Shown here one piece after another: positions 2,699-63,244 of a DNA stretch of 63,875 nucleotides. Each line of letters opens with the position of its first letter. Within the stretch, counting starts at the first letter, position 1. This stretch comes from Haliotis rubra (lineage: Eukaryota). The stretch is taken from positions 126 through 64,000 of the forward strand of contig NW_025765979.1 of NCBI RefSeq assembly GCF_003918875.1. The letters are read 5' to 3'. The notes under the pieces were generated by a model. It was given only the letters and a program-made list of their open reading frames with translations. It did not search any database and had not been told where the DNA came from. The position numbers and the translations under genes were made by a program.

Positions 2699-2861
2699 GG
2701 GCGGAGGGGTAGCCTAATGGTTAAAGCGTTGGCTCGTCACGCCGAAGACCGGGTTCGAATCTCCACATGGGTACAATGTGTTAAGCCCATTTCCGGTGTC
2801 CCCGCCGTAATGTTGCTGGAATATTGCCAAAAGCGGCGTAAAACCAAACTCAATCAGTCAG
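2699..2861 (+). mobile_element. tRNA-derived SINE family A (~165 bp)
   Basis: A-box GGTAGCCTAATGG, B-box GGTTCGAATC; 13-bp TSD TCCTTACTGTAAG (2686-2698, 2862-2874); empty site at ~47671-47683 in copy 2. Confidence 0.93.
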
Positions 2862-4020
2862 TCCTTACTGTAAGAATATTATCGTAATCAAAAACATCAT
2901 ACTAATTCTGTGCGAGCTGTTTTCATCCTAATGTCATAAATACAGGACATCAGACAGGGCAACAAATAATACCAACATTCTTCATATGATCAATTAACAC
3001 TCACTAAAATAAACATATTTACAGAAATGTGTTTGATAGCCTGTTCTTGTTGATATTTCAGAATTCCCTAGCTTTGTTTTGGATTTGGCCGATTGTTGAA
3101 TTGGTTGTGTGAACTGTTGAGGAGAAGAGATTCCAGACGGATTTGTTTTCAAGGGAAGCTGCTTCCAGCCAGAGAACAAAGGCTTTAAGAAGCTGCAGCA
3201 CTAACGAAGGACAACAATATATACGTCGTACATAGAGTGAGGGAGTCATGTTATAGCGGGAACTAGGGCTACAATAGCGTGGGGAAGCTTTAGTTAACTA
3301 CACTATGTTTAAGATCAGATTATAATCCGTGAAGCCTGTAGTATAGATACAATGGATTGAGACTGAATGTTGATGAGTTGATGCTTAACACTTGTACATA
3401 TGCCTTTCCATCCTTATTCTGATCATCACTTGCTTGATAACGGGGTTACAACAGAAACGTCGCTGTATTAAAGAAGTTGAACATCCATACATTGTTATCC
3501 TTCCTTAACCATACAACTGGTCGCCATCGGCTCCAAAGAGAAACTGAATGTACAGTATGTTTATTTCATTGTACTGCAGTAGGTGGTTGGCTTTGAATGA
3601 AATAATAAAAAATTAACGCTACGAACGGAACCCAGAGTCCCACGCATTACAATATCTTAAGGGAACTGACAACGTAAGTTCAAAAGTTTACATTATTACA
3701 GTTATGATCAATGTGAGCACAAATCTAATATTTGTCACAGGGAAAATAACCCTTTGTGTATACCAGTGTACCATTATAAGGAGATAGCAGATAATGCAGG
3801 TCTTACAGTGAAACCCAGGGTCAGGACAACCGGGACTCGAACCAACGATAATAGTTTTCTCGCACGCCTGATCATAACATCCTTGAAAATCTGGGTTAGA
3901 ATTGGTCTTTAGCCACTCATACATGTCATGAGATTGATTGGTCAGACTCGCTATCGTTCTTGACACGTCATCGTTTCCAATTATTTTTTTAGATCGATGC
4001 TCATGATGTCGATCACTGGA

Positions 4021-4266
4021 GTGGAGTGAGTGAGTTTAGTTTTACGCCGCACTGAGCACTATTCCAGCAATATGGGGAGTGGTCTGTAAATAATCGAGTC
4101 TGGACGAGACAATCCAGTGATCAACAGCATGAGCACCGATCTGCGCAATTGGGAACCGATGACATGTGTTAACCAAGTCAGCGAGTCTGACCACCCGACC
4201 CCGTTAGTCGCCTCTTACGACCAGCATAGGTTACTGAAGGTTCATTCTAACCCGGACCTTCACGGG
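4021..4266 (-). mobile_element. SINE-like retroposon family B, nested in an older oppositely oriented family B copy (~3880-4330)
   Basis: GTCGTAAGAGGCGACTAA core, (CTCA)n tail, 14-bp TSD TGTCGATCACTGGA (4007-4020, 4267-4280). Confidence 0.9.
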
Positions 4267-6683
4267 TGTCGATCACTGGATCGTCTGTTTACAGACTAGA
4301 GACACATAGTTTGAATATCAAACATCAAACATACAAACCTAAGGGAAACAACTCTGTACAGGAACTTGATTTTTACTGATGAAACGATGGTGATCATTGT
4401 CTTCTTTGTACACGTACAACCGCTCACGAGATTTTCCATTACCTGGTGTCAGTTAAAGCAACTTTACTACATTAATGCTAGACAATACATGGCTGATTCC
4501 TTTTCTCTTCCTTGTTCTGTGGTCCAAGTATAACTGTAGTGACAATTTATTCCCAATCCAGAAACATCCCACTCTTTAAAGCATCACAGATATGGTATCA
4601 ATGCATATTTCTTTATTTAAGTAGAATGAACTCTGTGGGTGAAACTCGGCGTGTACATATATCAGCCTTCAGCCAAAACATTAGTTGTGCCCCAACCGTG
4701 ACCATCTCGTATTATTCCGGCACAAGCCATCAACATGCCATGAACATCAGAACTACGTTAAACAAGAGTGATTGAATTAAGATTTAATGTCACATCGGCA
4801 GAGTTTCATCCATATCGTGAAGAAACAATTTTGACATTGATAAAGAATATGTGTATATGATAAAACATGTCGCCAAAGTACAATAAAACACCTAAACAAT
4901 CACAGGTAAATAAAAACTAGCATGTTAAGCTAAAACAAATAGCATTTTGGACAATACAGTATGAAAACACTGGCTATAGATCGCCAACTGGGGACCATGG
5001 ACGTTAGAGCCCAATGTTGATTTGTTATTAACAGATGTAATATTATTGCTTTGAAACTTGAAGTGAATTATAATTATTATTTTCTAAAAAATGTTTGAAA
5101 AGCGCACGTACAATCTCCAAAGCATGCCCGCAAGATCGTCAGAAATACACACAATTAGAAATCCGTTATAAAACAAACGCACGTGCGTGTTTTTGTATAC
5201 CTGACCGTCCATGGCATTATCCTTATAAATAAAAGTAACCACATGAGGCAAGACAATTCTGTTAGGTATATCCTGTGTACTTTAGACATGACGATACATA
5301 ATTTTGATAGATATTTAAACAATCATACAATGCCCCAAAACGACTTAAGTACTTGCGATTACTTATATCAAAGTACATGCAATCATCACGCGCGTTCTGA
5401 TTGGTTTGTCATATTTTCGCACACAACACAGCGTCGAGAGGGCACGAGTATTCCTGGAGTTTACGGAAAGGGGCGAATGGTGACGAATGGTTGTGCCCAA
5501 ATATACCTCTTTCAACAATATCATTTTCCATGGAAGCTCATTCCAAGCGTGTTAATCTCATTAAACGTAACAGAAACAAGGCTAATATATAGTGAACTAT
5601 TAATCGTTCGACATAAGTGACTTTATCGTTTCATTTATTCAGCCATACATGATTGTCAAACAACGGGTGAACTTCAATATTGATCGTATGAGTCGTATCA
5701 TGAAGCGGTCATAAAATCCAGATTATTGCATCGTCGAGGCACAATAATACTGATGTGACAAAGTGAACAAAATAGAAACATTTAATACTGGTCGTTGCAA
5801 TCGTCACCACTCGCCCCTTTCCCAAACCTCAATAAGAGTTGGTAAAGATAGCTTTCATGGCTTTCTAGGCCATATATACGCTTAAGACGATAATATCTGA
5901 TGCTCAGAGTAGCGTCCCTTCTGCGAAGTCAGGTGAACGACCGGCTGACAACGACCTCGGTCCAAAATAATGTACAACTTGACACAAAACATCAGCAACC
6001 GTGATGACATATCAGGTTTAGTTGCATTTCCTGTCCTACCTGGGATTTCTGTATATACAAGGGCTAAGGTTACCGCGTGTCATCTCGCAAACAAAAACGA
6101 AAATGGCTATAAACTGCCCATATGTTTTCGTTCAGTCTACCGGTGAATTGGTTATACAAATACTAAATAATATAACACACGGAAAGCTGATGGAATGGTC
6201 GGAATAAAATATAAAAGAAACAATTATTATATCAGAAATGAAAATGTTATTTTAGTTGGATTATTTACTGTATATATTTGAAATAAGAATGACCATAATG
6301 TAATTATGTTCACGTAACCATTTATGTAAACAATATTGAACATTTCAATTTAACTAATACAATATGTTAAGAACAAAAGTTGAGATAAACGATGAACTGT
6401 TTTCATAAAAATTAAAAATGTTGCTAGATGCAGATTGATTGCAAAAAAACAAGCATAGTCACGACACTGTGTATTTGGCAACCTTGGCAATTACAATTCA
6501 CTAAATTTTCTGATAAAAGAAGCATTCTATGTAGTATGTATTTCACTTCAAGTAGAAATCGTCGGATAGGCGAGGTTTCCGGATATCCTTGGTCCGGAAA
6601 AGTGTGCGTCCCCTAAATGTGTGTAAAGTTCCATTTCCCGGAAGTTGGTGTCTAACGACTGTATATTCACGCCCACAACGCGA

Positions 6684-9600
6684 TCAGAGGATTATTTGCA
6701 TCTGTTGAATTTGCCGTGTCAAGTTGTCCCTGTAACGTTTCTCTAGTTCACGGATGGCTGCAGTCAGTTTGTGAGAGGTATTCTGCTCATCTGTTGCTCT
6801 TGCACATGCGTACTTTGTATCTTGCCTATTGCCCTAAACAGGTCTTGTATTTGATCATTCGCCATCTTTGATTGTGTCCAAATGTTGACAAGCACGGGAG
6901 GGTTGTAGCAGAACTGGAGAAATTCTTTCAGGAAACTGGGAATGTTCTTGAGATATCCCTTCAAAGTGATATCGTCATCTAGTGTTGTGAACACAAGCAC
7001 TATTTTGTGTGATATTGGCTTCCTAGCAATTGCGCTGGCATGTTTGAAGAGCAGTTCCTCTTCATATGTCATTGGCGATGCCTTGACAACAAGCAAGAAA
7101 GCATCAGTGGAACTTGCCCTGCTCACCAACTCCTCAACAGTAGTCTGAATGTTCTGTCTGTTGTGCAAGGAAAAACCTGGTGTGTCCATTATCTGAAATG
7201 TCCTGTTATCCACGCTTGCCCGTTTCTTTTGACATACTGTTGTAGGTTTGAGTAATCCAGCTTCGAACAGTTTCTCGCCTGCAATTGTATTGGCAAGGAG
7301 ACTTTTCCCTGTCTTAGCGTAGCCCAGGAGCACAACACGCACGGTTTCTGTGGGAACTGAAACACAAATGCGAACATTTATTTCAGTGAGTAGTCATCAG
7401 CGAGCTGCATTTTGCCTTTGAAGAAGGCAACATGCAAATTAATAATATTTTAGCTATAAACTCACAACACTGAAATGAAAAGGCATCAGCCGATAATTTA
7501 CAATACGCGTTATGATACAATTCTTGTTTTCACAGGTATGACATAATCTGTGATACTAACCTTCATCGCGTTCGTAGATCCTCCATATCGGAGTCGGAAT
7601 TGCCTTCAGCTTGTCCTGAATTGTCTCAGTTTGTGAGGTGTGGCGGATACCATGATGTGCTTAAACTGTGTCAAGTCCTGACGAGACTGGCGGAAAGATT
7701 CTATAGTCTCGATTGTCACTTCATCTGGGGCATGGCTGAAAGTAGGCATATTCACACTCCTTATCTCTGACCATCCCATCACACAGAGATTGCGTGTTAG
7801 AATGTTCGTTAGCAATAAGACCCAACACTAGGCTAAGCCACTAAACCTGCTGAATATACAAAGTACCTAGCATGTATGATCACTTAGCCCCAGTCAACAC
7901 ATTCTTGAAGAACGAAGCTATATGCAAAACAACCAGCTCAATATTTCATGCCCTTTACAATAATTCATTTGCTCTGATGGAGCAAATTACCTCTAGTATA
8001 CAAACCTACTTTCTTTTGGTCTTTTCCTCCATGCTGTCACAGATGAGTAGTGTCTTCCCCTGCGTTCCAGTCTTTGGGCAGCTTCGAACGTGAACACAGT
8101 TTTCCCAGGTTGTGATTCAGGCACGTCTAATGGTTGGTGCAGATCAATATTGTCAAGTAACATTGACAACTGTTCTTTCTTCAAAACCCAGAACGCTCCG
8201 ACTTCACTTCCTTTAGATGACATTGGGATCCTTGTTCTTGCAACTGCGGCTGTTAAAGCAGTCTTCAGTCTTTCAAATTTCGAATCGTTCATGTACTTTT
8301 GATTAGGAAAGCACGATTCAATTACCATAGACTTTCTCTTATGAACGGTATTGTGAAAGTTTTTCTTTTTGAGATATAGTTTTTCCTCGGTGGCCAAAAA
8401 GATAAGATTGAACTTTTCTGCTGTGTATTTTCCAAGAATTACCCTCATGCGGCGAGCCAATTCAGCATTATACTGTTCAATGCCATCAAATGCCTCAGAT
8501 GCGAAAGATATATAAAATGGGAAGGCACCTTCGTGTAATGATTATTACGTCACAGTGCAAAATATCAGGAGGTTTGCTACTTGGCAAGTTTAAGGTTGTT
8601 GCAAGCGACGGACCAAATACAGCAAATCCCCTCCATTGTATGTCAACAGTTCAGCAACTCGTTTCACCACATGCGGACGTTCCTTCTTGAGAGTCCCAAC
8701 AAAGTTCAGTGGTAGCATTGCCTGATCTGCGTTAGTAAAGAAGTATGCAGTTAAGAGTATTAGACACATACATGTCAGTCAAGTATTATCAGGTGCTATA
8801 CTGTCTTGACAGTGTCCATACAGAGTCTTTAAATTTGTCGATATGGATTTGACTATCAACACTCCATCCTCTATAACTCCAGCACGATCATTTTGTGAAA
8901 GACCCCTTGTGTAGGTATTCCAACACGTTAGCCCTGGGGTATATAGAGCATGACAACAATTATAACGCGAACTAAAGGTGGCATTAGGGGTCGTTCATAA
9001 CTTATGGTTTGGGTGTGGAGTGTGGGGTGTGTTGATGATGATGATTATTATGGAGAGGCATGTACAATGTGAGTGACCCCACCATCCCCACCACCCTAAA
9101 ATTTATGAACAAAGAGACCCCTGCATGTCATGTACAAAATTGATGACACCCCACCACACACCTCCCTAGAACAATACCCGTGAAGGTTCGGGTTAAAATG
9201 AACCTTCAGTAACCCATGCTTGTCGTAAGAGGCGACTAACGGGATCGGGTGGTCAGGCTCGTTGACACATGAAATCGGTCCCATTTGCGCAGTGCGATGC
9301 TCATGCTGTTGATCACTGGATTGTCTGGTCCATACTCGATTATATATAGACCAATTCCATATAGCTGGAATATTGCTGAGTGCGGCGTAAAACTAAACTC
9401 ACGCACTCACTCACTCACTCACCCCTAGAACAAAATGGGTGACCTCTCCTTACAATCATCATGAACAAGGATGCGGCTGTGCACGGCACGATAAAGAACT
9501 TTTAGACTGTTGAATTCTTAGACTTCTGGACTGTGACGATTTCGGTACATTATGTAGACATGTACAACAAAGCGATAGCCTTTGTCATCAGGGGTCCCTT

Positions 9601-10344
9601 TGTTAGCCTGAATTGTCATGTGTCAGTTTCTCTGCGACTTTTAACTGGTTAAACCTAAACTATCCCTTCTAAATCTTGGAATTACTGATTATGCATGCAT
9701 GAATCATTTAAGTGTATTATGTTTTCATTAGAGATAGAGCGTCGGTGAATATGCGTAAGGAGTCGGTTATTCTATACCTTGTGAAAAATATGCATGAGCA
9801 GCATCGAAGCTGTCACCATAGTAGTAGGTAGTTGGCGGAAATGGATCACTGCATGGTAATGTCAGCCGGTGTATGTCTCTGTCTGTATCTGACCCTGAAG
9901 TTGATATGAACATGCTTATGAAACGAAGTTGCGAGGCTTGAGTATACGTGTTATACAACAATTTGTCTTTCTTTCTGATGGGGAGTTTTGGGTCCAGGGA
10001 AACGTAGGATCCAAATATCCTATGTTTGACTCCAAATGAAGAGTAGCAGTTCTTTAGGGTTTTGACAAACTGACAAACGGATAAAGAAAGATACGTACAA
10101 TTCTCCGAAAGCACTCGGTATCATCGTAATTTCTGCAATGATTCATAAACACATGCTCATGATGCGCGTGGGTATTCGACGTTGATTTTATGAACGATAA
10201 TTTGTGACCTTGGAAGTGTTTTCCACAAGTAACCTTTTTCATGTGCATAAAGAAACAGTTTTGCAAGAACTGGAGTTCAACTGGTGCCAAATGGGGTGGC
10301 TTCTTGTCTAAATGGCTTACCCCAAAATGTAACCTAGACGTCAT
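6684..10344 (-). CDS. Schlafen-like (SWADL domain + degenerate helicase lobe)-AIG1/GIMAP GTPase fusion gene, copy 1, frameshifted; exons ~10344 or ~10069-9778, 8726-8010, 7735-7561, 7356-6684
   Basis: Last exon has GYAKTGKS (G1), DTPG (G3), FLLVV, VFT (G4-like). Upstream exons give GFAVFGPSLATTLNL..HCDVIII..VLKKEQLSML..QPGKT..TLLICDS, colinear with the Schlafen middle/helicase region. GT-AG sites have compatible phases (1,2,1). About five small indels. Confidence 0.78.
6764..7342 (-). CDS. AIG1-type (GIMAP/IAN) GTPase domain ORF, last exon of the fusion gene
   Basis: VVLLGYAKTGKSLLANTIAG, IMDTPGF, AFLLVV, IVLVFT; C-terminal helical tail continues to TGA at 6684-6686 after a 2-bp frameshift at ~6776. 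Confidence 0.92.
   Translation of the reverse strand: MRVVLLGYAKTGKSLLANTIAGEKLFEAGLLKPTTVCQKKRASVDNRTFQIMDTPGFSLHNRQNIQTTVEELVSRASSTDAFLLVVKASPMTYEEELLFKHASAIARKPISHKIVLVFTTLDDDITLKGYLKNIPSFLKEFLQFCYNPPVLVNIWTQSKMANDQIQDLFRAIGKIQSTHVQEQQMSRIPLTN
9175..9422 (+). mobile_element. SINE-like retroposon family B, full length, intronic
   Basis: ACCCGTGAAG 5' end, GTCGTAAGAGGCGACTAA core, CTCA tail, TSD CCCTAGAACAA (9164-9174, 9423-9433). Confidence 0.9.
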
Positions 10345-10700
10345 AAATGAAGAATAACATGTAACAACTTTACTAAGAGTGTTACATATTTGTCAATCTC
10401 ATCTCTAAATAATGTACATAGATATAAAGCTATCAGCGCAGTACATTAACATCACAGGAGATAAATACATTTGCTAACTCTACCAATAATGTTTCTATAA
10501 TAAGGTAAGAAAACTATTTTGAATATATTTCTTATATACAAAAAAGATCTGGTATTCCATATGGTATTCCATTCTGAATTCATAGGTTGCTCTTAACTAA
10601 CTGCTTGTCCATGAGTACATAATTCGGGATGCAGACATGTTATGTCAAAATAATGCACTAAAATGCAGACAACTCCAAACAGTGGCAGCACTTTGGGAAA

Positions 10701-11750
10701 TATACTGAACCACAAAGAAAATGTCGCACCGATGGCGGTTCCTTAAAAACACACACTTTCATTCAGTCTAATAAACAATCAAAACGGAGGATTGAGTTCA
10801 AACGTGACAAATTACGGGTTAACACTAATCTCTTTCGGGAATCACATTTAGAGTTCACACAAACAAAATCACCAAAAATGGTACCATTAAGATACCCCCA
10901 AAGTCAGTATTATGTGTGGCCGGTATGGGCAACGATGAAAGGGTAGTGAATTAGCTGATTGATGAAAGCAATAGGCAACTTTTGGGTCCATACTCTGTGA
11001 AATGCCTGCTCGAATCCAGCAGCAGTTGTCGGCCTTGGTTGGAGGTCATTCAGTCTTCTTTGAATCTCGTCCCAATGGTGTTCTACTGGGCTCAAATCCG
11101 GACTGAGTGCAGCCTTTAGTGTAGGGCTTGGATGCCATGTCGTCTTGGGAAGTCCAATGTCACTCTGGCAGTGTGGGCACGAGCGTTGTCTTGCTGGAAC
11201 GTCCAAAATGTGGTACAAAGTGGGATCTTTATAGCGAGTAGCTGTCACGTCACTTCATCATCCTGACCGAGATTCTGGAACAACTCGGTGCCAGTTATCG
11301 GGTTCAGACCGACTGCACCCTACACTATGATGCTCTTGGACCACACCACGAGTCTCTTTCAACAATACACTCATTGAAAACGGTTCCCCACGCCTTCATC
11401 CAGTCCTCACTCTGTCATCGACAGTCGAAACACAATACCGGCTTTCATGAGAGAAAAGCACAGTTCCCCATTGTCGATAACGCCAATTTCGATGCTGAGC
11501 TGCTCCATTGAAATCTGGGTTTGATGGTGTGGAGCGGTGAGGACACGACTACGATATGATCTGCACAACAGCTGAGCAAAACGTCTACGCACTGTATCGG
11601 CACTGATGTAGTCTGTTGTGAGCCCTGTCCCAAGACTTGGTTCCTCTGGCTCAAGATGTGTGTACCTACAGTTGGCTCAGGAACTGTGAACAGTTGACGT
11701 ATGACGTGCACGAAGTCTTCGCCTTAAAGATCTATGTATCGTCAAGTTTC
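10701..11750 (-). mobile_element. Degenerate Tc1/mariner element (one end)
   Basis: TATACTGAACCACAAAGAAA terminus similar to the TIR at 21413; translation SPDLSPVEHHWDEIQRRL; other TIR not found. Confidence 0.8.
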
Positions 11751-13279: not shown

Positions 13280-13518
13280 TGGTTGGTTGTTGTGTTTCTT
13301 TAACGCCGCAATAACAGAATTAATCCAGCTTCATTGCAGCTGTTTGTAGATAATCGAGTCTGGACCAGACAGTCCAGTGATCAACAGCATGAGCACTGAT
13401 CTTCGCATTTGGGATACGATGACATGTGTCAACCACGTCAGCGAGCCTGACCACCCGATCCCGTTAGTTGCCTCTTATGGGTTGCTGAAGGTCAATTCTA
13501 GTCCGAATCTTCACGGAT
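13280..13518 (-). mobile_element. SINE-like family B copy (diverged)
   Basis: Matches 9175-9422 in reverse; CAAC-repeat tail. Confidence 0.85.
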
Positions 13519-14252: not shown

Positions 14253-14953
14253 CCTTCTGCTTGTAAATCAATGTATTAAGGGGCAATCAGTGCTTCTCAA
14301 AGACATGTATTTTTGTATTCGCTACCAGTATAGATTCTATAGCGTGAAAATCAACCTTTTGTCATCATGGCCCGCCAAAGCCATCATATTTATACCAAAT
14401 CTCGAGTATACCATGGATGTTCGGGCAAGTTCGCTATTTGTGCGTTTGTCATACTTTATAAATAAGTACATAAGCTGCCCGATCACAGGACAAACGGTAC
14501 TGATTCGTTGTATCCGCGCTGCAAGTACGCATGTATACGTCCAATATACGCGGTTCATAGCTCGTGCCTGGAGATCAGCGTATTGCCGTGTATGGAATGA
14601 ACAAACTTACACAAAACGATTGAGATGAATATGCGGTGGGTATTGTGCGTAAGACTGCGTATGAAAGAAATGTCAATGCGCAAGTCATAAGGAATTAGGA
14701 TACGCAGAAGTGTGACAGAGTCCTAAGATCCATGAGGAGACGTTGTGTGGCTGTAAGATACCCTACAGGAGGCCAGAACCCTTACTGAAGACCTTAGTCG
14801 AAATGTTCTCCACGCTGTGAACTTCATTCTGGAGGGTACCTTGATAAATGACATATAAGTATACACCTTCAATAAAAGCTTCGCAGGTTACAAACGAAAC
14901 AATCATAGGACTATTGTGCTAATTTCAGCATTTGTTTCATGATTTCAGATAAG

Positions 14954-17587
14954 ATGTTGCTGTGCGTCCTGTGCTTGCTCCTTGCCTGCCTTTCTCTGAC
15001 TCAAGGGAAACAATTGTACATCTCCTGTAAGCCTTGTGTATGTAGGGTCACACCCAATGGAAAGTTGATCGCCAATTGTAAGGGCAAACATCTATCTAAC
15101 ATCCCCAAACAGATTCCAAATTCAGTATCATACCTGTGTTTGTCTCACAACAGTATTAAGCATCTGCCAGGTGGCTCGTTTCAACGGTTCTCTGCTTTGG
15201 AACGTCTTGATCTGTCTTTCAATCAACTGAAAAGATTGGATGTACACACTTTTGCAGGAGCTACAAATCTGCTACATTTGAACCTCAATGGAAACCATCT
15301 CCAACTTAACGAATCAGCATATCCAGAGGGCATATTTAGAGAGCAGAAAAATTGCTTACGCTGAACATCGCAAACAACAACAAGATCGCAGATTCAGTAT
15401 ACCCAGATAAAGCGCTTGGTGATCTTACTGCTCTTCAGAGACTTTTCATTGACGGTGTTCGGAATGCCTCGTTTGGGACTGGATTTTTGAAACTGAAGAA
15501 TCTTACTACGCTGTCGTTATCAGGCAAAAGGGGCCACTGCTCCGTTCAAACCCTGTTGAATACATCATTTCTCTACACTCCATCTGTCAGGAACCTGGAC
15601 ATAAGCAAATGTAGAATCAACTATATTGAAGCAAGTGCATTCTGGCCATTAAGGCAGATTGATACACTCGATGTATCTGACAATCAATATCTAGGGTTTG
15701 ATCGCATGGGTGAAGCTATATATGGACTTCAAGGAAATTCTTCTCTAAGAGTTTTAAAGATCAACAGAATAGTGAAAACATTTGCCATTGGGGTTCACCT
15801 AAAGAAACACAATACGATATATTTCAGTGATCTTAATTTAAAAGAGATTCATATTGGTGCAAATAGATTGGAACTCATAGACCAGGAATGCATTGGTCAC
15901 ATGAAAACAGTGGAAATAATATCCATGAATCACAATAGAGTGACATTCGGATCCTTTCTCCTGAGTCTCAATACACTGACAAATCTGCGGAAAATGTATG
16001 CTTATAACCAGTATTCATCTAATATCCCCTTCAATCAAGTTGATGCAATTAGAGGCACAATCCTCTCCCCAAACCGCTGCCCTCATCTGAACCACAGCCA
16101 ATGGTTCAATATTCACATAACAGCATCCATGCCTGTGAACAATGTGAGGCACATTGCAGTAATGGCCTTTCGTACCGTAACCATCATAATAGTCCCTATA
16201 ATGATGCAAAAAATGACCAAACCAGTATCTTAGGTCTTGTTTTTCATATACCACTACCTCCAAATGCAACCTATGTAAATGTTAGCAACAGCAAATTGAA
16301 CTATGATATTGTTGAGCTCAACTTTCTAACAAACCAATTTAAAACTATTGACATTTCACACAATGTCTTTCCAAACTGGATAGGTCCAATAAATGAAAGT
16401 CAAACATTTGAATATTTAGATCTCTCAGACAATTACTGTAAATATGTATCTCACAGATTTTTTATGTATGCTGATGGACTAAAAGTCTTAAATATAAGTC
16501 GAAATTACCTATCAGTGTCCCTTCTAGCGGACACAAATGGGCAGATATTTGGCAACCAAACAAACTTGGAAGTCATACGAATCTCACACAATCTTATTCG
16601 GGAACTGCCGTCATTAATATTTAGAAGACTTACCAGACTTGAGGTTATTGATTTAAGCTGGAACATGATGGCCTCCTGGAACATTGAAATTAGGCACATG
16701 CCGCACCTCCATACCTTAGACATCTCCGGAAACAGGTATGAAGGCATTCCAACACACCTGACAAATCAAATTGACTATATCATGAGTAATAGAAACGACA
16801 CTTTTCATCTCAGCATCAAGGGTAACATCTTGAAATGTGATTGTTCGACACTGGAGTCATTAGAATGGATTACAAGGCCGTTTATTTCCATTGAAGATCC
16901 TGGCAGCACAAAATGCACCTTATCAGATGGGGAAACCATTTCATTTATAGATATAGAAAATGTTAAAGCCAAGCTCCAAGTACGTTGCAAAATAGTTATT
17001 CCCCTCCTGTCTTCAGCAGTAGTAGAATACTGCTTTCCATGTTGATATTTGGAGCTGGTATGGTGTACCGATATCGATGGAAGCTACGCTATCTGTACTA
17101 CACCACAAGACGGAAGTACAGGGGGTATCAAAGACTTGGACAAGAAGAAGACCATTTTACTTATGATGCCTTTGTTTCCTATGCTGAGGCAGACAGAGGT
17201 TTCGTCGTTGAAGAAATGCGGGCTGTTCTAGAGAGAACCTACGGCTTGAGGTTGTGCATCCATGACCGTGACTTCATGGTTGGTGAAGCCATCACCGCCA
17301 ACATCATCAATGCTATTCAGTCAAGCAGGAAGACCATTGCTGTTTTGTCACCTAGCTTTGCAAAGAGCTCCTGGTGTGACTATGAAGTTCACATGGCCAA
17401 GTTGGAGAGCATCCACACTGGAAGAGATGTCCTGTGTGTGTTGTGGTATACCGATGTACCGGACACTAGAATCCTCAGTAGAGATATTCGGGACATGATT
17501 GAGTATGATACGTATATTAAGTATCCTACACAAGAAAATGACAAAGAAGAGTTTTGGACGAAAATCAAAGCTGCAATCAGCTTTTAA
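14954..17587 (+). CDS. Toll-like receptor (single cysteine-cluster type), one coding exon, three frameshifts (~15350, ~16070, ~17005-17040)
   Basis: Signal peptide MLLCVLCLLLACLSLTQG; LRRNT CKPCVC..NC; many LxxLxLxxN repeats; LRRCT GNILKCDC; TM then YRYRWKLRY; TIR box1 YDAFVSY, LCIHDRDF, SSWCDYE, FW. Splice acceptor TTTCAG just before the ATG. Confidence 0.95.
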
Positions 17588-21412: not shown

Positions 21413-22928
21413 TACTGAGTCAAAAAAGAAACTTCACAAAATGTAATTTGAAAAATAATGAATAATTTTTTTCCGATGATACATCTATCTATCCGAAATG
21501 GGATCCCTATCTTTCGACTCTAGAAAAAACGTTAGCAAAACCCGCTCAAACCCATCCATTCGTCGTGCAAATGATGTAAGTGTCAAATCAGGTTTTGCAC
21601 ATGCAGTCGATCACGTGATCTTCGCATCGAAGTTTTCTTGATATGCACGTGTTTGCATTGGCCTCAAGAACTGAAAAAAACACTTTTAAACCACAGTTCT
21701 TACGGTACTTGAAATGCCACGATTGTCAAATGTGCAACGTGAACGTGCCGTTGGCATGTTGCAAGCGGGAAGATCAGTTATTGACGTCGCAAGAGCAATG
21801 GGATGCAGCCGTCGTACTGTAAATGACTTGCGAGGCCGTCTACAACAAATTGGCACCACTTCTGATCGCCCAAGGTCGGGTCGTCCACGTGTGACGTCAC
21901 GAGCAGAAGACCGTCAAATCGTCCTACGTCACCTACGTGGTAGATTTCTGCCGGCTACACGAACCAGGGCTGAGATGTTTAGAGGTTGACTGTCCTAACA
22001 GACCATTCGAAATGGGTTGCGCACTGCCAATCTCCATTCTCGACGTCCATATCGTGGGCCAATATTGACGACGTTTCATCAACGTCAACGTCTGCTGTGG
22101 GCCCAACGTCACCTCCGATGGACCCAGAGAGACTGGAATCGAGTCGTCTTTAGCGCTGAATCCAGGTTTACCCTCAAATTCGCGGACGGAGACGACGTCT
22201 TGAACGGTATGCCCAATGTTGTGTACAGGAAGTCGACAGATTCGGGGGCGGAAGTTGCATGGTGTGGGGTGCTTTCTGTGGGAACAACCGTTCCCGACTT
22301 CTGGTCATCCGTGGAAACCTCACAGCTGCTGTTTACCGCGACCAGGTGCTCACCCCTGAACTCGTTCCTTTCATGGCGGCTCATGGCCCAGGTCTACAGT
22401 TCCAGCATGATAATGCTCGGCCGCATACCGCGATGTTGACACGAAATTTCCTTCAAAACGCTGGAATCAACGTCATGGACTGGCCATCGAGGTCCCCTGA
22501 CCTTAATCCAATAGAGCACGTTTGGGATGCACTTGGGACAAGGCTTCGTGGTCTTAGGAACCAACCTCAGAATTTGCAGGAACTTGGCGCTGCCTTGCAA
22601 GAGCAATGGCGCAGAATCCCCAACCACGTGTTCACAAGCATCAGGCCGTCGATGAGTAGACGGTGTTTGGCAGTGGTGAATGCGCGGGCAGCCATACACG
22701 ATATTGAACTGAGAAATTTCGCATTTTTATTCTTGTGACTTGACATTCTGTATACCCATGTTTTGGAACGGCGGTGTAGCCTAATGGAACTGATTATGGC
22801 ACTGTCAGTGTATCGAGTACATCACACAGATCTCAGCAATGAAATAATAACAATTTAACCATCTTACTATCTCTTGTTCTTTTATAGTGCCCTGAAGAAA
22901 GAATGTGAAGTTTCTTTTTGACTCAGTA
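21413..22928 (+). mobile_element. Full-length Tc1 (DD34E-type) transposon, defective transposase 21714-~22720
   Basis: TIRs TACTGAGTCAAAAAAGAAACTTCACA / TGTGAAGTTTCTTTTTGACTCAGTA, TA TSD; HTH region, GRPRVT, FSAESRF (D to A), FQHDNARPH, SPDLNPIEHVW; stop and frameshifts. Confidence 0.95.
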
Positions 22929-41290: not shown

Positions 41291-41324
41291 GCCTTAATGC
41301 TTAACATATACAGTTGTAGAGTAA

Positions 41325-41521
41325 GGGGCGACTAACGGGATCGGGTGGTCAGACTCGCTGGCTTGGTTGACACTTGTCACCATATCCCAGTTGCGTAGAT
41401 CGATGCTCATGCTGTTGATCACTGGATTGTCTGATTCCGACTCAATTATTAACAGGCGGCCATCATATAGCTGGAATATTGCTGTGTGGCATAAAGTAAT
41501 TAACTCACTCACTCACTCACT
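41325..41521 (+). mobile_element. SINE-like family B, 5'-truncated
   Basis: GGCGACTAACGGGATCGGGTGG..GCTGGAATATTGCT..CTCACTCAC. Confidence 0.87.
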
Positions 41522-44623: not shown

Positions 44624-44679
44624 TATATACTATATATATATATATATATATATATACACTGCTATATGATCCTAAGGTA

Positions 44680-47650
44680 TCATATAGCAGGTACGTATAC
44701 GTGTGCATGCACATTCATCCTGGTTTCATACAGTGGTGTACGTATACGTGCATGCACATTCATCCTGGTTTCATACAGTGGTGTGCGTATACGTGCATGC
44801 ACATTCATCCTGGTTTCATACAGAGTGTGTATACGTGCATGCACATTCATCCTGGTTTCATACAGGAGAGTGTGTATGCGTGCATCCAGATTCCTCCTGG
44901 TTTCACACTGGTTTCAATATGCGTACACGTGCATGCACATTCATCCTGGTTTCATACAGCGGTGTGTGTATACGTGCATGCACATTCATATTGGTTTCAT
45001 ACAGGAGTGTGTGTATACATGCATGCACATTCATATTGGTTTCATACATCGGTGTGCGTATACGTGCATGCACATTCCTCCTGGTTTCATACAGCAGTGT
45101 GTGCATATACGTGCACGCACATTCATCCTGGTTTCATACAGGGGTGTGTGTATACTTGCATGCACATTCATCCTGGTTTTCATACAGGACGGATGTGTGT
45201 ATACGTGCATGCACATTCATTGCAAGTGTGTATCCTGGAGTTCATACAGGAGTGTGTATATACGTGCATGCACATTCATCCTGGTTTCATACAGGGTTCT
45301 GTGTATGTGCATGCACATTCATCCTGGTTTCATACACAAGTGTGTGTGTGTATACGTGCATGCACATTCCTCCTGGTTTCATATCCTGGTTTCATAAAGG
45401 GGTGCACGTATACGTGCACGTATACGTGCATGCACATTCATCCTGGTTTCATAAAGGGTGGTGCGTATACGTGCATGCACATTCATCCTGGTTTCATACC
45501 TCCTGGTTTGTGTGTATCCGATGCATGCACATTCCTCATGCACATTCATTCCTCCTGGTTTTCACGTTCATCATTCATCCTGGCGGTGTGTGTATATGTG
45601 TATGCGTCATTCAAAAGCTGTTAAAATATGGTACTTGTTGGTCCTGCCTGGCGCTCGGCATTAATGGGTACAACAAAGGACTGAAAGTCGGCTCGGAGTC
45701 ACTATAATGTGTCTACAGGAGTTGTGTATTCGTGCTTCACTGCGGCATGGTATCTACAGTGAGTATACGTGCACTATACAAAACCAGTTTAAGTCTGGAC
45801 TAGTACAAGCAGCCACATTCATCCTGGTTTCACACACACACATGCATGCACATCGTCATATGAGCGGCATATTTTTACGTGCACGACGTTAATCCCAATT
45901 TCACCTCACCTCACTTCATCCCTAGTTTCAGACGGATGTGTGTGTATACGATGCATGCACATTCATCCTGGTTTCATACAGCGGTGTGTGTATACGTGCA
46001 TGCACATTCATATTGGTTTCATGCAGGGTGTGTGTGTATACGTGCATGCACATTCATCCTTGTTTCATACAGCAGTGTGTGTATGCGTGCATGCACATTC
46101 ATCCTGGTTTCATACAGGGGTGAGTATATGTATTCATATGCATGCACATTCATCCTGGTTTCGTACACACCAGTATGTGTATATGTGAATATGTGTTCTT
46201 ATATGTGTGTATACGTGCATGCACATTCATCCTGGTTTCATACGGATGTGTGAGTATAGGTGCATGCACATTCATATTGGTTTCATACATAGGTGTGTGT
46301 ATACGTGCATGCACATTCATCCTGGTTTCATACAGGTGTGTGTATACGTGCATGCACATTCATATTGGTTTCATATACAGAGATGTGTGTGTATACGTGC
46401 ATGCACATTCATATTGGTTTCATACAGGAGTGTGTGTATACGTGCATGCACATTCATCCTGGTTTCATACAGGTGTGTGTGTATAAGTGCATGCACATTC
46501 ATGGATTTCATACAGCTGTGTGTGTATATGTGCATGCACATTCATCCTGGTTTCATACATGAGTGTGTGTATACGTGCATGCACATTCATATTTATTTCA
46601 TACAGGAGTGTGTGTGTATACGTGCATGCACATTCATCCTGGTTTCATACAGGAGGTGTGTGTATACGTGCATGCACATTCATATTGGTTTCATACAGGA
46701 GTGTGTGTATACGTGCATGCACATTCATCCTGGTTTCATACAGGAGTGTGTGTTTTCGTGCATGCACATTCATATTGGTTTCATACAGTAGTGTGTGTAT
46801 ATGTGCATGCACATTCATCCTGGTTTCATACAGGGGTGTGTATGCATGCATGCACATTTATATTGGTTTCATACAAGATGTGTGTGTATACGTGCATGCA
46901 CATTCATCCTGGTTTCATGCAAGGTGTGCGTATATGTGCATGCACATTCATATTGGTTTCATACAGGAGTGTGTGTATATGTGCATGCACATTCATCCTT
47001 GGTTTCATACAGAAGTTTGTGTATACGTGCATGCACATTCATCCTGGTTCATACAGGAGTGTGTGTATATGTGCATGCACATTCATTGTGGTTTCATACA
47101 GGAGTCTGTGGTTTCATATATGTGAATGCATGCACATTCATCCTGGTTTCATACAGGAGTGTGTGTATATACGTGCATGCACATTCATATTGGTTTCATG
47201 CAGGTGTGTGTATACGTGAATGCACATTCATAATGGTTTCGTACATAGTAGTGTGTGTGTATACGTGCATGCACATTCATATTGGTTTCATACAGTAGTG
47301 TGTGTATACGTGCATGCACATTTATATTGGTTTCATACAGCGGTGTGTATATACTTGCATGCACATTCATATTTGATTTCATACAGCGGTGAACGTACAC
47401 TCATGCACATTCTTCCTGGTTTCATACAGCGGTGTGTGTATACGTGCATTCACATTCATCCTGGTTTCATACAGGAGTGTGTGTCATGTGCATCCACATT
47501 CATATTGGTTTCATACAGGAGCGTGTGTCATACGTGCATGCACATTCATATTGGTTTCATACAGAGGTGTGTGTATACGTGTATGCACGTTCATCCTGAT
47601 TTCATACAGCGGTGTGCGTATATGTGTATGCACATTCTTCCCGGTTTCGT
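44680..47650. repeat. ~40-bp tandem satellite array 2
   Basis: Same unit as array 1, with the same SINE in corrupted form at ~45610-45915 and the same right-hand junction. Confidence 0.97.
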
Positions 47651-49140
47651 AGTTTTAGTATTAGGTGCCATTCCTTACTGTAAGAATATTATCGTAATCA
47701 AAAACATCATACTAATTCTGTATGAGCTGTTTTCATCCTAATGTCATAAATACAGGGACATCAGACAGGGCATCAAATAATACCAACATTCTTCATATGA
47801 TCAATTAATACTCACTAAAATACAGTAAACATATTTACAGAAATGTGTTTGATGGCCTGTTCTTGTTGATATTGCAGAATTCCCCTAGCTTTGTTTTGGA
47901 TTTGGCCGATTGTTGAATTGGTTGTGTGAACTGTTGAGGAGAAGAGATTCCAGACGGATTTGTTTTCAAGGGAAGCTGCTTCCAGCCAGAGAACAAAGGC
48001 TTTAAGAAGCTGCAGCACTAACGAAGGACAACAATATATACGTCGTACATAGAGTGAGGGAGTCATGTTACAGTGGGAACTAGGGCTACAATAGCGTGGA
48101 GAAGCTGAGTTAACTACACTATGTTTAAGATCAGATTATAATCCGTGAAGCCTGTAGTATAGACAATGGATTGAGACTGAATGTTGATGAGTTGATGCTT
48201 AACACTTGTACATATGCCTTTCCATCCTTATTCTGATCATCACTTGCTTGATAACGGCGTTAGAACAGAAAAGTCGCTGTATTAAAGAAGTTGAACATCC
48301 ATACATTGTTATCCTTCCTTAACCATACAACTGGTCGCCATCGGCTCCAAAGAGAAACTGAATGCACAGTATGTTTATTTCCATTGTACTGCAGTAGGTG
48401 GTTGGCTTGAATGAAATAATTAATAATTAACGCTACGAACGCTTTGTAGATCGGAACCCAGAGCCCCACGCATTACACACTATCTTAAGTGAACTGACAA
48501 CGTAAGTTCAAAAGTTTACATTATTACAGTTATGATCAATGTGAGCACAAATCTAATATTTGTCACAGGAAAATAACCCTTTGTGTATACTACCAGTGTA
48601 CCGTATATGTGTGCCAGTCTCTCCACTCCACATATTTGGTCTGTTTTCAGTGATTAATAGCTGCCATAATAGCTACGAATAAAACTTAATCGCCGTTCCC
48701 CATGTTAATTTGTACGTCGCTGTATGCTGATATTGAAATACAATGCTCATTTGAGGTCAGTGTTTGTATTAGTAATACAAATAATAATGACGTATGAGGA
48801 CCGCCAAAACGACTGTTTATCAGACTCATGTCTGCCTGTCTTTTATCTTTTAAAACCTTTTAAAATATTTGTCCAGTTGTATTACGCCGTGTCAGCTTGA
48901 CGTGGGAGGAGATAGCAGATAATGCAGGTCTTTACAGTGAAACCCAGGGGTCAGGACAACCGGGACTCGAACCAACGATAATAGTTTTCGCACGCCTGAT
49001 CATAACACCCTTGAAGATCCGGGTTAGAATTGGTCTTTAGCCACTCATACGTGTCATGAGATTGATTGGTCATCGTCTTTCTTGACACGTCATCGTTTCC
49101 AATTATTTTTAGATCGATGCTCATGATGTCGATCACTGGA

Positions 49141-49385
49141 GTGAGTGAGTGAGTTTAGTTTTACGCCGCACTCAGCACTATTCCAGCGATATGGGGGTGG
49201 TCTGTAAATAATCGAGTCTGGACCAGACAATCCAGTGATCAACAGCATGAGCACCGATCTGCGCAATTGGGAACCGATGACATGTGTTAACCAAGTCAGC
49301 GAGTCTGACCACCCGACCCCGTTAGTCGCCTCTTACGACCAGCATAGGTTACTGAAGGTTCATTCTAACCCGGACATTCACGGGT
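49141..49385 (-). mobile_element. SINE-like family B (counterpart of 4021-4266)
   Basis: Near-identical sequence, same TSD. Confidence 0.9.
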
Positions 49386-51148: not shown

Positions 51149-52199
51149 TGGTAGGAATCATATAGACAGAACCATAAAACACTGGTCGAGATATTCCTCT
51201 AACAAGGATGTTTACTTCCAGGTTCTGAAATAACAGAATGATACAATGTAGCAACTTATATTTAGCACTTATTATCATGAAACAACATTTGTGAATATCC
51301 CATTATAATGAAACTACAGCAATAAGTTCACAATACATGACACTGTCATGCAATGACTGCTCCCAAGTTTCACGAAACTTTGAAAAAGTCTAGCAAAACT
51401 ACAGATAGTAAATTCTATGAATTAACACTGAACATGTTGACTTAATATTGATTCTAAAACTACAAACTGACTCTAAAATCCTGACATTATAACAGAAATC
51501 TGCTATATAGTTACAAAACACAATGTATCAGATCGCACCATTACCACGAAAATAGGATACAGTTTTGCACGTTACCAAATAATTGAACATTCCTGTAATT
51601 TAAAAATACTCTGAAAATAGTATAATACAAAGCCACAAAACATGGATATATTATAAGAGTGACATTTGTACCTGAAGAGTGCATCTCGACCGTCTCTGAA
51701 ACTTCAACATTCAATCTATATTTGCTCTCAACAAACTCCTTTTTGACCATCGCGGGTCACTCATGCGCTCGCTCGCAGTAAACTTTTAACAGCCAGGGAG
51801 CATCTATTGTATCAAATGTCAACGACTTAAGCCACTACTACGATGTATCTACAGTCAGAGAACTTAACTACTGGTCAAATAAAGATATTATTCCAAACGA
51901 GTACACAAAATGCAAAATACTGCTGCACATTTCCTGACTAGAAACAATTCTGCAAAATATTATGATTACATCAGGGAAAACCAAACAAATTGTAGTCATG
52001 ACCACACTAAATATACACTATTAGTCTCTAAAACCAAAACAGTTACAACATAATAAGACTGTCTGCATGGTATTTCATAATACCAATGTACATGATAAAA
52101 TGACAAGCTCTTTATACTGACACACAAATAAAACTAACCATAGCAGAATAATTCAGGTGCAACCTAGCCTTAAAACAACATGTAATATTATTCCAAACA
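51149..52199 (-). repeat. 3' LTR of BEL/Pao element
   Basis: TGGTAGGAATC...TTCCAAACA; matches 57790-58827. Confidence 0.95.
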
Positions 52200-52241
52200 A
52201 TCCTCGGGGGGCAACAAAATGAGCATGATAACAAACTGGTC

Positions 52242-57739: not shown

Positions 57740-57789
57740 GATTCTCTCTACCTACCAAGCTGAACACAGTACTTTACTCTTCAGAAAAT

Positions 57790-59675: not shown

Positions 59676-62600
59676 TCAGAGGATTATTTGCATCTGTTGA
59701 ATTTGCCGTGTCAAGTTGTCCCTGTAACGTTTCTCTAGTTCACGGATGGCTGCAGTCAGTTTGTGAGGTATTCTGCTCATCTGTTGCTCATGCACATGCG
59801 TACTTTGTATCTTGGCTGTTGCCCTAAACAGGTCTTGTATTTGATCATTCGCCATCTTTGATTGTGTCCCAATGTTGACAAGCACGGGAGGTTGTAGCAG
59901 AACTGGAGAAATTCTTTCAGGAAACTGGGAATGTTCTTGAGATATCCCTTCAAAGTGATATCGTCATCTAGTGTTATGAACACAAGCACTATTTTGTGTG
60001 ATATTGGCTTCCTAGCAATTGCGCTGGCATGTTTGAAGAGCAGTTCCTCTTCATATGTCATTGGCGATGCCTGTACAACAAGCAAGAAAGCATCAGTGGA
60101 ACTTGCCCTGCTCACCAACTCCTCAACTGTAGTCTTAATGTTCTGGCTGTTGTGCAAGGAAAAACCTGGTGTGTCCATTATCTGAAATGTCCTGTTATCC
60201 ACGCTTGCCCGTCTCTCTTGACATACTGTTGTAGGTTTAAGTAATCCAGGTTCTCGCCTGCAATTGTATTGGCAAGGAGACTTTTCCCTGTCTTAGCGTA
60301 GCCCAGGAGCACAACACGCACGGTTTCTTTGGGAACTGAAACACAAATGCGAACATTTATTACAGTGAGTAGTCATCAGCGAGCTGCATTTTGCCTTTGA
60401 AGAAGGCAACATGCAATTGATAATATTTTAGCTATAAACTCACAACACTGAAATGAAAAAGGCATCAGCCGATAATTTAGAAAACGCGTTATGATACAAT
60501 TGTTTTCACAGGTATGACATAATCTGTGATACTAACCTTCATCGCGTTCGTAGATCCTCAATATCGGAGTAGGAATTGCCTTCAGCTTGTCCTGATTGGT
60601 CTCGAGTTTGTGATGTGTGGCGGATACCATGATGTGCTTAAACTGTGTCAAGTCCTGACGAGACTGGTGGAAAGATTCTATAGTCTCGATTGTCACTTCA
60701 TCGTGGGCATGGCTGAAAATAGGCATATTCACACTCCTTATCTCTGACCATCCCATCACACAGAGATTGCGTGTTAGAATGTTCGTTAGCCATAAGACCC
60801 AACACTAGGCTAAGTCAATAAACCTGCTGAATATACAAAGTACCTAGCATGTATGATCGCTTAGCCCCAGTCAACCCATTCTTGAAGAACGAAGCTATAT
60901 GTAAAACAACCAGCTCAATATGTCATGCCCTTTACAATAATTCATTTGCTCTGATGGAGCAAATTACCTCTAGTATACAAACCTACTTTCTTTTAGTCTT
61001 TTCCTCCATGCTGTCACAGATAAGTAGTGTTTTTCCGCTGCGTTCCAGTCGTTGGGCAGCTTCGAACATGAACACTGTTTTCCCAGGTTGTGATTGCAGA
61101 TCAATATTGTCAAGTAACATTGACAACTGTTCTTTCTTCAAAACCCAGAACGCTCCGACTTCACCATTTTTTAGATGACATTGGGATCCTTGTTCTTGCA
61201 ACTGCGGCTGTTAAAGCAGTCTTCAGTCTTTCAAATTTCGAATCGTTCATGTTCTTTTGATTAGGAAAGCACGATTCAATTACCATAGACTTTCTCTTAT
61301 GAACGGTATTGTGAAAGTTTTTCTTTTTGAGATATAGTTTTTCCTCGGTGGCCAAAAAGATAAGATTGAACTTTTCTGCTGTGTATTTTCCAAGAATTAC
61401 CCTCATGCGGCGAGCCACTTCAGCATTATACTGATCAATGCCATCAAATGCCTCAGATGCGAAAGATATAAAAATAGGAAGGCACCTTCGTGTAATGATT
61501 ATTACGTCACAGTGCAAAATATCAGGAGGTTTGCTACTTGGCAAGTTTAAGGTTGTCGCCATATGCGGATGTTCCTTCTCGAGAGTCCCAACAAACTTCA
61601 GTGGTAGTATTGCGGGATCTTCTTTAGTACCTAAAGAAGTATGCAGTTACCAGTATTAGACACATACATGTCAGTCAAGTATTATCAGGTGCTATACTGT
61701 TTTGACAGTTTCCATACAGAGTCTTTAAATTTGTCGATATGGATTAGACTATCGACGCTCCATCATCTATAACTCCAGCACGGTCATTCTATAAACTACC
61801 CTAGTGTAGGTATTGCAACACGTTTGTCCTGGGGTTATAGAGCATGACAACAATTATAACGCGAACTAAAGGTGGCATTAGGGGTCGTTCATAATTTATG
61901 GCCTGGGTGTGGAGTGTGGGAGAGGATGATGATGATGATTGTTATGGAGAGACATGTACAATGTAAATGACCCCACCACTCCCACCACCCTAAAGTTTAT
62001 GTTTAAAGAGACCCCCTGCATGTCATGTACAAAATTGATGACACCCCACCACACACCCCTCCCTAGAACAATACCCGTGACGGTTCGGGTTAAAATGAAC
62101 CTTCAGTAACCAATGCTTGTCGTAAGAGGCGACTAACGGGATCGGGTGGTCAGGCTCGTTGACACATGTAATCGGTCCCATTTGCGCAGTGCGTTGCTCA
62201 TGCTGTTGATCACTGGATTGTCTGGTCCAGAATCGATTATATATAGACCGCTGCCATATAGCTGGAATATTGCTAAGTGCGGCGTAAAAACTAAACTCAC
62301 GCACTCACTCCCTAGAACAAAATGGGTGACCTCTCCTTACAATCATCATGAACAAGGATGTGGCTGTGCACGGCGCGATAAAGAACTTTTAGACTGTTGA
62401 ATTCTTAGACTTCTGGACTGTGACGATTTCGGTACATTATGTAGACATGTACAACATTACGTCATCCAAAGCGATAGCCTTTGTCATCATCGGGGTCCCT
62501 TTGTTAGCCTGAATTGTCATGTGTCAGTTTCTCTGCGACTTTTAACTGGTTCAACCTAAACTATCCCTTCTAAATCTTGGAATTACTGATTATGCATGCA

Positions 62601-63244
62601 TGAATCATTTAAGTGTATTATTTTTGCATTAGAGATAGAGCGTCGGTGAATTTGCGTAAGGAGTCGGTTATTCTATACCTTGTGGAAAATATGCTTGAGC
62701 AGCATCGAAGCTGTCACCATAGTAGTAGGTAGTTGGCGGAAATGGATCACTGCATGGTAATGTCAGCTGGTGTATGTCTCTGTCTGTATCTGACCCTGAA
62801 ATTGACATGAACATGCTTACGAAACGAAGTTGCGAGGCTTGAGGAATACGTGTTATACAAAAATTTGTCTTCTTTCTGATGGGGAGTTTTGGGTCCAGGG
62901 AAACGTAGGAACCAAATATACTATGTTTGACTCAGTTGAAGAGTAGCAGTTCTTTAGGGTTTTGACAAACTGACAAACGGATAAAGAAAGATACGGACAA
63001 CTCTCCGCAAGCACTCGGTGTCATCGTAATTTCTGCAATGATTCATAAACACATGCTCATGATGCGCGTGGGTATTTGACGTTGATTTTATGAACGATAA
63101 TTTGTGACCTTGGAAGTGTTTTCCACAAGTATCCTTCTTCATGTGCATAAAGAAACAGTTTCGCAAGAACGTGAGTTCAACTGGTGCAAAATGGGGTGGC
63201 TTCTTGTCTAAATGGCTTACCCCAAAATGTAACCTAGACGTCAT
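59676..63244 (-). pseudogene. Schlafen-like-GIMAP fusion gene, copy 2; exons ~63244-62679, 61630-60987, 60712-60537, 60335-59676
   Basis: Colinear with copy 1; ~65-nt deletion removing the SWADL-like motif start, 21-nt deletion before PGKT, net 10-nt frameshifting deletion after the GTPase P-loop, further 1-bp indels. Confidence 0.78.
62073..62310 (+). mobile_element. SINE-like family B (counterpart of 9175-9422)
   Basis: Same sequence, TSD CTCCCTAGAACAA. Confidence 0.9.

Follow-up and report, generated by a model that had tools for sequence, protein, structure and literature searches.

Two probably decayed gene copies in Haliotis rubra point to an abalone gene that joins a Schlafen-type SWADL module to a GIMAP GTPase

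In the present study, a stretch of 63,875 nucleotides of the abalone Haliotis rubra (RefSeq assembly GCF_003918875.1, contig NW_025765979.1, positions 126 to 64,000 of the forward strand) was analysed over its full length, which is hereafter called the window. An initial annotation of the window had proposed an immune protein in which a Schlafen middle/helicase module is fused to a GIMAP (AIG1) GTPase. Taken as a whole, the locus is probably best explained by duplicated and decayed copies of an abalone gene encoding a SWADL domain, a helicase stub and a GIMAP GTPase. First, the upstream module contains a genuine homologue of the SWADL domain of Schlafens. Second, the splicing of this module to the AIG1 exon in one open reading frame (ORF), proposed by the initial annotation, is predicted in four abalone species, with the same exon junctions in each. 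Third, neither of the two window copies has an uninterrupted frame across all coding exons; both carry frame-breaking insertions or deletions (indels), and as assembled the window does not encode the protein.

The Schlafen homology was visible only because a family profile was built, and the window pieces alone were insufficient. With these pieces, the upstream exons matched no Pfam family above threshold, and the longest piece of exon A of the second copy gave a weak match to PF21026, the Schlafen 'GTPase-like' family, which corresponds to SWADL (13 bits, E=0.083). A HMMER search of 1.84 billion representative sequences, with window 7993-8484 (minus strand) as the query, returned 13 proteins at E<=0.001, 11 of them from abalones. 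The remaining two looked low-complexity or spurious and were dropped. The top two matches, XP_046342684.2 of H. rufescens (558 aa, E=7e-56) and XP_046584059.1 of H. rubra (388 aa, E=6e-47), both terminate in an AIG1 domain. The family profile was an alignment of 13 modules, which was searched against all PDB sequences. It aligned at positions 33-318 to residues 398-679 of SLFN5 (7ppj) with E=6.4e-9, and it also matched SLFN14 (E=8e-7), SLFN11 (E=2.8e-5) and SLFN12 (E=1e-3). Only Schlafens were found below E=0.1, the next match being at E=0.12. By comparison, a single-sequence phmmer search of the PDB with the orthologous protein reached SLFN11 only at E=0.36.

The predicted fold led to the same family. 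The AlphaFold2 model of the H. rufescens module had a predicted local distance difference test (pLDDT) score of 85.6 and a predicted template modelling (pTM) score of 0.87. When this model was compared with the PDB using Foldseek, the top 13 matches were all SLFN5, SLFN11, SLFN14 or SLFN12 (E=1e-13 to 3.5e-6), and the next match followed at 2.4e-3; for SLFN5 (E=1e-13), the template modelling (TM) score by query was 0.67. In the AFDB clusters and the ESM Atlas, the chordate SLFN13, SLFN14 and SLFN12 came out on top, with TM scores by query of up to 0.77 over 323 residues, the Atlas value for SLFN13. Thus, the Schlafen match proposed for the upstream exons, for which the lack of any significant match had been named beforehand as the disqualifying outcome, was obtained at E=6.4e-9 with the profile and at 1e-13 with Foldseek.

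The module could also be read as the remnant of a generic NERD-like nuclease and superfamily 1 (SF1) helicase that merely resembles Schlafen. PF21026 matched 7 of the 13 modules, which supports a Schlafen assignment; its scores, however, always stayed just under the gathering score (25.6 vs 27 bits), and this shortfall speaks for the NERD-like origin. Bacterial NERD/UvrD, NERD-helicase and SLFN-g3_helicase proteins are also present in the AFDB and ESM Atlas lists, where they rank well below the Schlafens. A language-model atlas search with a piece of the window returned, as look-alikes, small proteins of bacteria and clusters with a NERD domain; their recognition score was below the reliable range, and they were taken only as a remote structural hint. 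The SWADL (PF21026) domain by which Schlafen groups II and III are recognized was found in both the profile and the fold searches, and the origin from a NERD-like nuclease appears very unlikely.

Given a Schlafen homology, the parts that have been kept and lost can be delimited. In SLFN14, the RNase domain spans residues 9-350, SWADL 379-570 and the helicase 571-907, and SWADL was reported to have no structural homologue outside Schlafens (PMC12135189). By these SLFN14 domain borders, the abalone module of approximately 345 aa corresponds to SWADL followed by ~100 residues at the start of helicase lobe 1, a stretch that reaches from Walker A to the strand of Walker B. The arrangement of the group III Schlafens (SLFN5, SLFN11, SLFN13 and SLFN14) is retained: SWADL leads straight into SF1-helicase lobe 1 with equal order and spacing, and the SWADL-motif position, S-L-A-x-x-L-[ND]-[LF], precedes a C-D-[VIL]-x-L-I strand. 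The sequence identity to these proteins is only 13-18%. In contrast to group III, the abalone fusion has no RNase core, its helicase ends after the Walker B strand, and an AIG1 domain stands in place of the rest. SWADL is likewise shared with the group II Schlafens of the SLFN12 type, which combine RNase and SWADL without a helicase (profile E=1e-3, Foldseek 2e-6). SLFN12 shows that SWADL can occur without a working helicase; however, it keeps the RNase domain and has neither the P-loop stub nor the GTPase.

The N-terminal SLFN core/AlbA_2 RNase domain is present in all Schlafen groups I-III (PMC12135189). In the intact abalone orthologues, approximately 70 residues precede the module, and no Pfam match to this domain or any other was found there. 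Instead of a complete two-lobe SF1 helicase (PF09848, with Walker A and Walker B), only the part of lobe 1 between the Walker motifs is present, the profile aligning up to about position 330 with SLFN5 up to residue 679; lobe 2 and motifs III-VI are absent, and the AIG1 exon directly follows the stub. Lacking the RNase core and having only part of the helicase, the fusion protein is not a Schlafen by the definition used in the literature. The initial annotation had described a Schlafen whose C-terminal half was replaced by AIG1. An AIG1 domain does follow the module, but more has been lost than this description implied, including the RNase core, and ~100 residues of lobe 1 are left. The GIMAP-fused subfamily keeps the G-K-T of Walker A but not the acids of Walker B, in whose place H. 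rufescens has A-A and the window S-A; in exon B of the first window copy, the Walker B position reads I-M-V-S-A-T, the acidic pair being gone. The subfamilies without GIMAP have lost the Walker A lysine, and some keep D-E at Walker B, so that no module holds both Walker motifs together. With neither the Walker B acids nor any of lobe 2 left, the stub, as judged from its motifs, cannot act as a helicase, and ATP hydrolysis by it would be very unlikely.

The GTPase half is more readily classified. Exon C of the first copy contains an open stretch of 192-195 codons that matches Pfam AIG1 (PF04548) with E=1.4e-24 and 87.1 bits against a cutoff of 27, and the Pfam AIG1 scores of the orthologues are 80-86 bits. 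The motifs G1 (GYAKTGKS), G3 (DTPG) and a G4-like TTLDD were recognized, and the nearest solved relatives of the orthologous protein in the PDB are GIMAP5, GIMAP7, GIMAP2 and GIMAP4 (E=2.5e-9 to 4e-6). PF04548 above threshold, together with G1 of the form GxxxxGK[ST] and G3 of the form DxxG, classifies the fusion protein as a GIMAP by the sequence criteria of that family. As in the GIMAP/IAN (AIG1) GTPases, including the expanded mollusc families, the AIG1 domain is complete, with G1, G3 and the conserved box. Unlike the usual GIMAPs, the abalone fusion carries a Schlafen-derived N-terminal module of ~340-345 aa, and its G4, T-T-L-D-D, is atypical compared with the usual x-K-x-D. No C-terminal membrane anchor was evident on reading the sequence, no prediction having been run.

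The junction between the two halves was delimited in the first window copy (copy 1), whose exon borders map base for base onto an intact H. rubra gene, with AG acceptors and GT donors at all of them. Exon A is followed at 8010 by GTAGGT and joined in phase 2 to exon B, which begins at 7735 behind a CAG acceptor; exon B is followed at 7561 by GTTAGT and joined in phase 1 to exon C, which begins at 7356 behind TTTCAG. The same junctions are used in the RefSeq models of H. rubra and H. rufescens, so that the splicing from 8010 to 7735 and from 7561 to 7356 given in the initial annotation was confirmed in both position and phase. The peptide strings quoted with it are all present on the minus strand; however, as a composite they are drawn from both copies and from more than one frame, and no single copy can be translated throughout. 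The intact H. rubra locus (QXJH01000484.1) is syntenic with copy 1 on both flanks, 93.5% identical to it, and holds one unbroken ORF across four exons. In H. rufescens, exon lengths (117, 721 and 176 nt) and phases are the same. Full-length forms are predicted in H. rufescens (XP_046342684.2, 558 aa, and a second protein of 616 aa), H. cracherodii (559 aa) and H. asinina (520 aa).

RefSeq divides the ORF at 8455-11611 of the intact H. rubra locus into two models, LOC124291176 (169 aa) and a 'GTPase IMAP family member 4-like' protein (388 aa). This division, and the fact that the orthologous proteins are gene predictions throughout, count against a fusion and raise the alternative that adjacent Schlafen-like and GIMAP genes were mistakenly joined, both in gene prediction and on the first reading of the window. 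The split, however, falls inside exon A, where the ORF is continuous: the 169-aa model ends via an odd internal splice, and the 388-aa model starts at an internal Met. Exon 1 aside, the full H. rubra protein would have about 560 aa. Moreover, the 388-aa 'GIMAP' model itself holds 165 residues of the Schlafen-like module, joined via both introns, and the AIG1 exon, which begins in phase 1, lacks its own start codon. One model covers the full length at each of two loci in H. rufescens, and also in H. cracherodii and in H. asinina, with conserved exon lengths and phases. The ratio of nonsynonymous to synonymous substitution rates (dN/dS, Nei-Gojobori) between the H. rubra and H. rufescens genes was 0.32 overall, with 0.38 for SWADL, 0.24 for the stub and 0.31 for AIG1; the two genes may be paralogues, which does not affect the sign of the result. 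All three segments are under purifying selection, and therefore all three have been kept as coding sequence. A merger of two neighbouring genes is regarded as hardly credible, and the gene is taken as a genuine fusion in what follows.

So far, the gene has been found only in abalones (Haliotis). Word-indexed single-sequence and profile searches for the module, of limited length and sensitivity, returned only Haliotis proteins, a result that does not imply absence elsewhere. Within the abalones, modules of ~345 aa that are 20-30% identical occur in other proteins, e.g. LOC124130348 and LOC124118569 of H. rufescens and XP_067656262.1 of H. asinina. In place of the GIMAP, these proteins carry other partners. 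Among three H. rufescens proteins of ~1340-1362 aa and an H. asinina protein of 679 aa, the module is either duplicated in tandem ahead of a long coiled coil and an SPRY-like C-terminus (Pfam SPRY E=0.004, weak) or present once ahead of NHL-like repeats (E=4e-4, weak), and in some abalone proteins the module stands with nothing after it. Together, they make up a small abalone family in which the module is combined with different outputs.

The exons of both window copies and the surrounding features are listed in Table 1. The second copy claimed by the initial annotation was recovered: copy 2 spans 62795-59676 in the same orientation as copy 1 and is 93-94% identical to it over a matching stretch at 58981-63547. 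Exon 2 of copy 1 was placed by a three-way alignment from the H. rubra exon and by tblastn with the orthologues, and its CAG acceptor and GTATAG donor are conserved. The window gave no match, by tblastn and blastn with three orthologues, to the first coding exon, which encodes the basic N-terminus in the intact orthologues; in other species, this exon lies 6-8 kb upstream. The putative N-terminal ORFs of the initial annotation at 9767-10344 found no support beyond exon 2. The ORFs 9767-10114 and 10054-10344 had no Pfam family match, and within 9778-10344 only 9894-9778 is an exon.

Table 1. Positions in the window of the exons of the two gene copies and of associated features
Feature	Position	Strand	Description
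Copy 1 exon 2	9778..9894	-	Short N-terminal region before SWADL-like domain; ends in phase 1
Copy 1 exon A	8010..8726	-	Schlafen SWADL-like domain and Walker A (GKT) start of helicase lobe 1
Copy 1 exon B	7561..7735	-	Remainder of helicase lobe-1 stub
Copy 1 exon C	6684..7356	-	AIG1/GIMAP GTPase and C-terminal helical tail
Copy 2 exon 2	62679..62795	-	Mapped by alignment and tblastn
Copy 2 exon A	60987..61618	-	SWADL-like domain and Walker A start, with deletions
Copy 2 exon B	60537..60712	-	Reading frame intact throughout
Copy 2 exon C	59676..60335	-	AIG1 GTPase, broken
Segmental duplication block 1	2859..10825	.	Pairs with 47669-63875; collinear, 93-98% identical
SINE-like interspersed repeat	9176..9412	.	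In intron between exon 2 and exon A of copy 1; outside gene product

Lesions were called base by base relative to the intact H. rubra ORF. Copy 1 carries five frameshifts: -1 nt near 8632, +1 at 8513 and -1 near 8060 in exon A, -1 near 7628 in exon B, and +2 at 6777 in exon C. The shifted frames run into stops, and the +2 nt at 6777 replaces the tail, so that the assembled stop lies at 6764-6766 instead of the ancestral 6684-6686. In copy 2, three frameshifts (+1 nt at 61166, a 10-nt deletion near 60254, after the GTPase G1, and -1 near 59892) are accompanied by in-frame deletions of 66 nt (22 codons) in the SWADL-like domain and of 21 nt just before Walker A. The copies have no lesion in common, and no nonsense substitution was found in either. 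On its own lineage, copy 2 has a neutral-looking dN/dS of 0.87 (28 nonsynonymous and 9 synonymous changes), and copy 2 is very probably a pseudogene.

For copy 1, the case is weaker, and several observations weigh against decay and in favour of a functional gene, whose five frameshifts would be consensus errors of the assembly, e.g. from mis-polishing between 94%-identical duplicates, and whose protein would be made from 9894-6684. All lesions are of 1-2 nt, and three lie in short G runs and are contractions (two from G5 to G4 and one from GG to G). No splice site is damaged, no nonsense substitution is present, and the dN/dS on its own lineage is 0.33, on only 11 exon substitutions (6 nonsynonymous and 5 synonymous). 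The ratio of indels to substitutions (0.41) is above that of copy 2 and of the H. rubra lineage (about 0.12-0.13). In addition, the Toll-like-receptor-type gene at 14939-17587 in the window is likewise split by frameshifts, into four overlapping frames, which makes consensus errors possible for copy 1. On the other hand, the small indels on the copy 1 lineage are unbiased (5 gains of 1 nt vs 4 losses), and two of the lesions (+A after T4 and +CT) are not homopolymer errors. The deletions of 10, 21 and 66 nt in copy 2, in the same assembly, cannot be read errors, and the missing first coding exon also speaks against a functional copy 1. The indel/substitution ratio of the copy 1 lineage is alike in exons (5/11) and introns (9/23), as expected in the absence of selection; this equality is predicted by loss of constraint and also by uniform consensus errors, and it fits both. 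On balance, copy 1 is rather likely a pseudogene, and a functional copy 1 disguised by assembly errors is considered unlikely, though much less so than the alternatives discussed above.

Herein, we propose a model for the intact protein, which comprises ~560 aa, with a short basic N-terminus, SWADL, ~100 residues of helicase lobe 1, the AIG1/GIMAP GTPase and a short helical tail. GIMAPs are switches that dimerise or form scaffolds in a GTP-dependent manner. The GIMAP domain is the only nucleoside triphosphatase (NTPase) with a complete motif set in the protein, and by analogy it would be the sole working NTPase, acting as a GTP-dependent dimerising or oligomerising switch. In Schlafen structures, dimer contacts are made in part by SWADL and the helicase, and the SLFN11 helicase contributes to the binding of single-stranded DNA. 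The SWADL/pseudo-helicase module may act without catalysis, as a platform that binds nucleic acid or protein or mediates dimerisation and that would recruit or gate the GTPase. This could take place in the nucleus, because the N-terminus is basic and looks bipartite, resembling a nuclear localisation signal. Because the same module precedes a coiled coil and an SPRY-like domain, precedes NHL repeats or stands alone, a role as a portable sensor/adaptor in lineage-specific, defence-type gene families is suggested. We infer an immune role because both parent families, Schlafen and GIMAP, are immune-related. The model of a binding platform and a GTPase switch with an immune role is a best guess. 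The full-length AlphaFold2 model, built from a 6-sequence alignment, also counts against it, being of low confidence (pLDDT 35, pTM 0.22), so that the packing of the GTPase and the stub is unreadable from it.

We offer only as a tentative hypothesis, somewhat short of an even chance, that abalones detached SWADL and a dead helicase stub from the Schlafen RNase and reused them as a portable sensor/adaptor, wired to a GIMAP GTPase, to a coiled coil with an SPRY-like domain, or to NHL repeats, and that a GIMAP switch controlled by a Schlafen-derived ligand-binding domain serves antiviral or antibacterial defence. If this were true, the abalone module would be the first SWADL described outside vertebrate Schlafens and their poxvirus copies, and a GTPase switch under a Schlafen-derived ligand-binding domain would be a new type of GIMAP. 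Apart from this hypothesis, a SWADL that is under purifying selection on a GIMAP, without an RNase or a working helicase, offers a natural experiment on what SWADL does alone, whether in dimerisation or in the binding of a ligand or nucleic acid. Schlafen-type modules are not restricted to vertebrates, and a new architecture is added to the large and poorly understood GIMAP expansions of molluscs. The initial annotation knew of no description of this architecture. No paper describing a Schlafen-GIMAP fusion was found in the literature searched on Schlafens, GIMAPs, molluscs or Haliotis, and SWADL in invertebrates; however, the fusion is already present in RefSeq, without a functional name, as an 'uncharacterized protein' or 'GTPase IMAP family member 4-like'. 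It is of moderate interest for the evolution of Schlafens and GIMAPs. The window itself, with its two decayed duplicates, would be mainly a record of birth-and-death turnover in the family.

The window is eukaryotic, rich in repeats and free of N runs. The locus is one of two gene copies that arose from a segmental duplication of at least 8 kb, and the partner block at 47669-63875 is interrupted at 51153-58828 by an insertion of ~7.7 kb with a Pao/BEL retrotransposon. This long terminal repeat (LTR) type element, at 52481-57739 on the minus strand, consists of several ORFs and includes Peptidase_A17 (E=3e-47), reverse transcriptase, integrase, a zinc knuckle and DUF1759 gag-like pieces. A repeat of ~240 nt resembling a short interspersed element (SINE) is present in many copies that are 72-87% identical (9176-9412, 62073-62311, 4019-4267, 49139-49385, 13299-13516, 41321-41521 and others), and each gene copy has one of them in the intron that separates exon 2 from exon A. 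Long tandem satellite-like arrays at 2-2665 and 44676-47651 flank both duplication blocks, and their ORFs give spurious DUF5822 matches; such arrays also adjoin the orthologous H. rubra locus (QXJH01000484.1, 18256-21100). A remnant of a Tc1/mariner-type transposase at 22017-22738 (plus strand) shows HTH_Tnp_Tc3_2 and DDE_3 in two overlapping frames. Finally, the Toll-like-receptor-type gene lies on the plus strand and encodes LRR_8 repeats followed by TIR (E=7.5e-17) in the ORFs 14939-15364, 15352-16233, 16101-17045 and 16985-17587, and this split points either to a pseudogene with frameshifts or to small-indel assembly errors.

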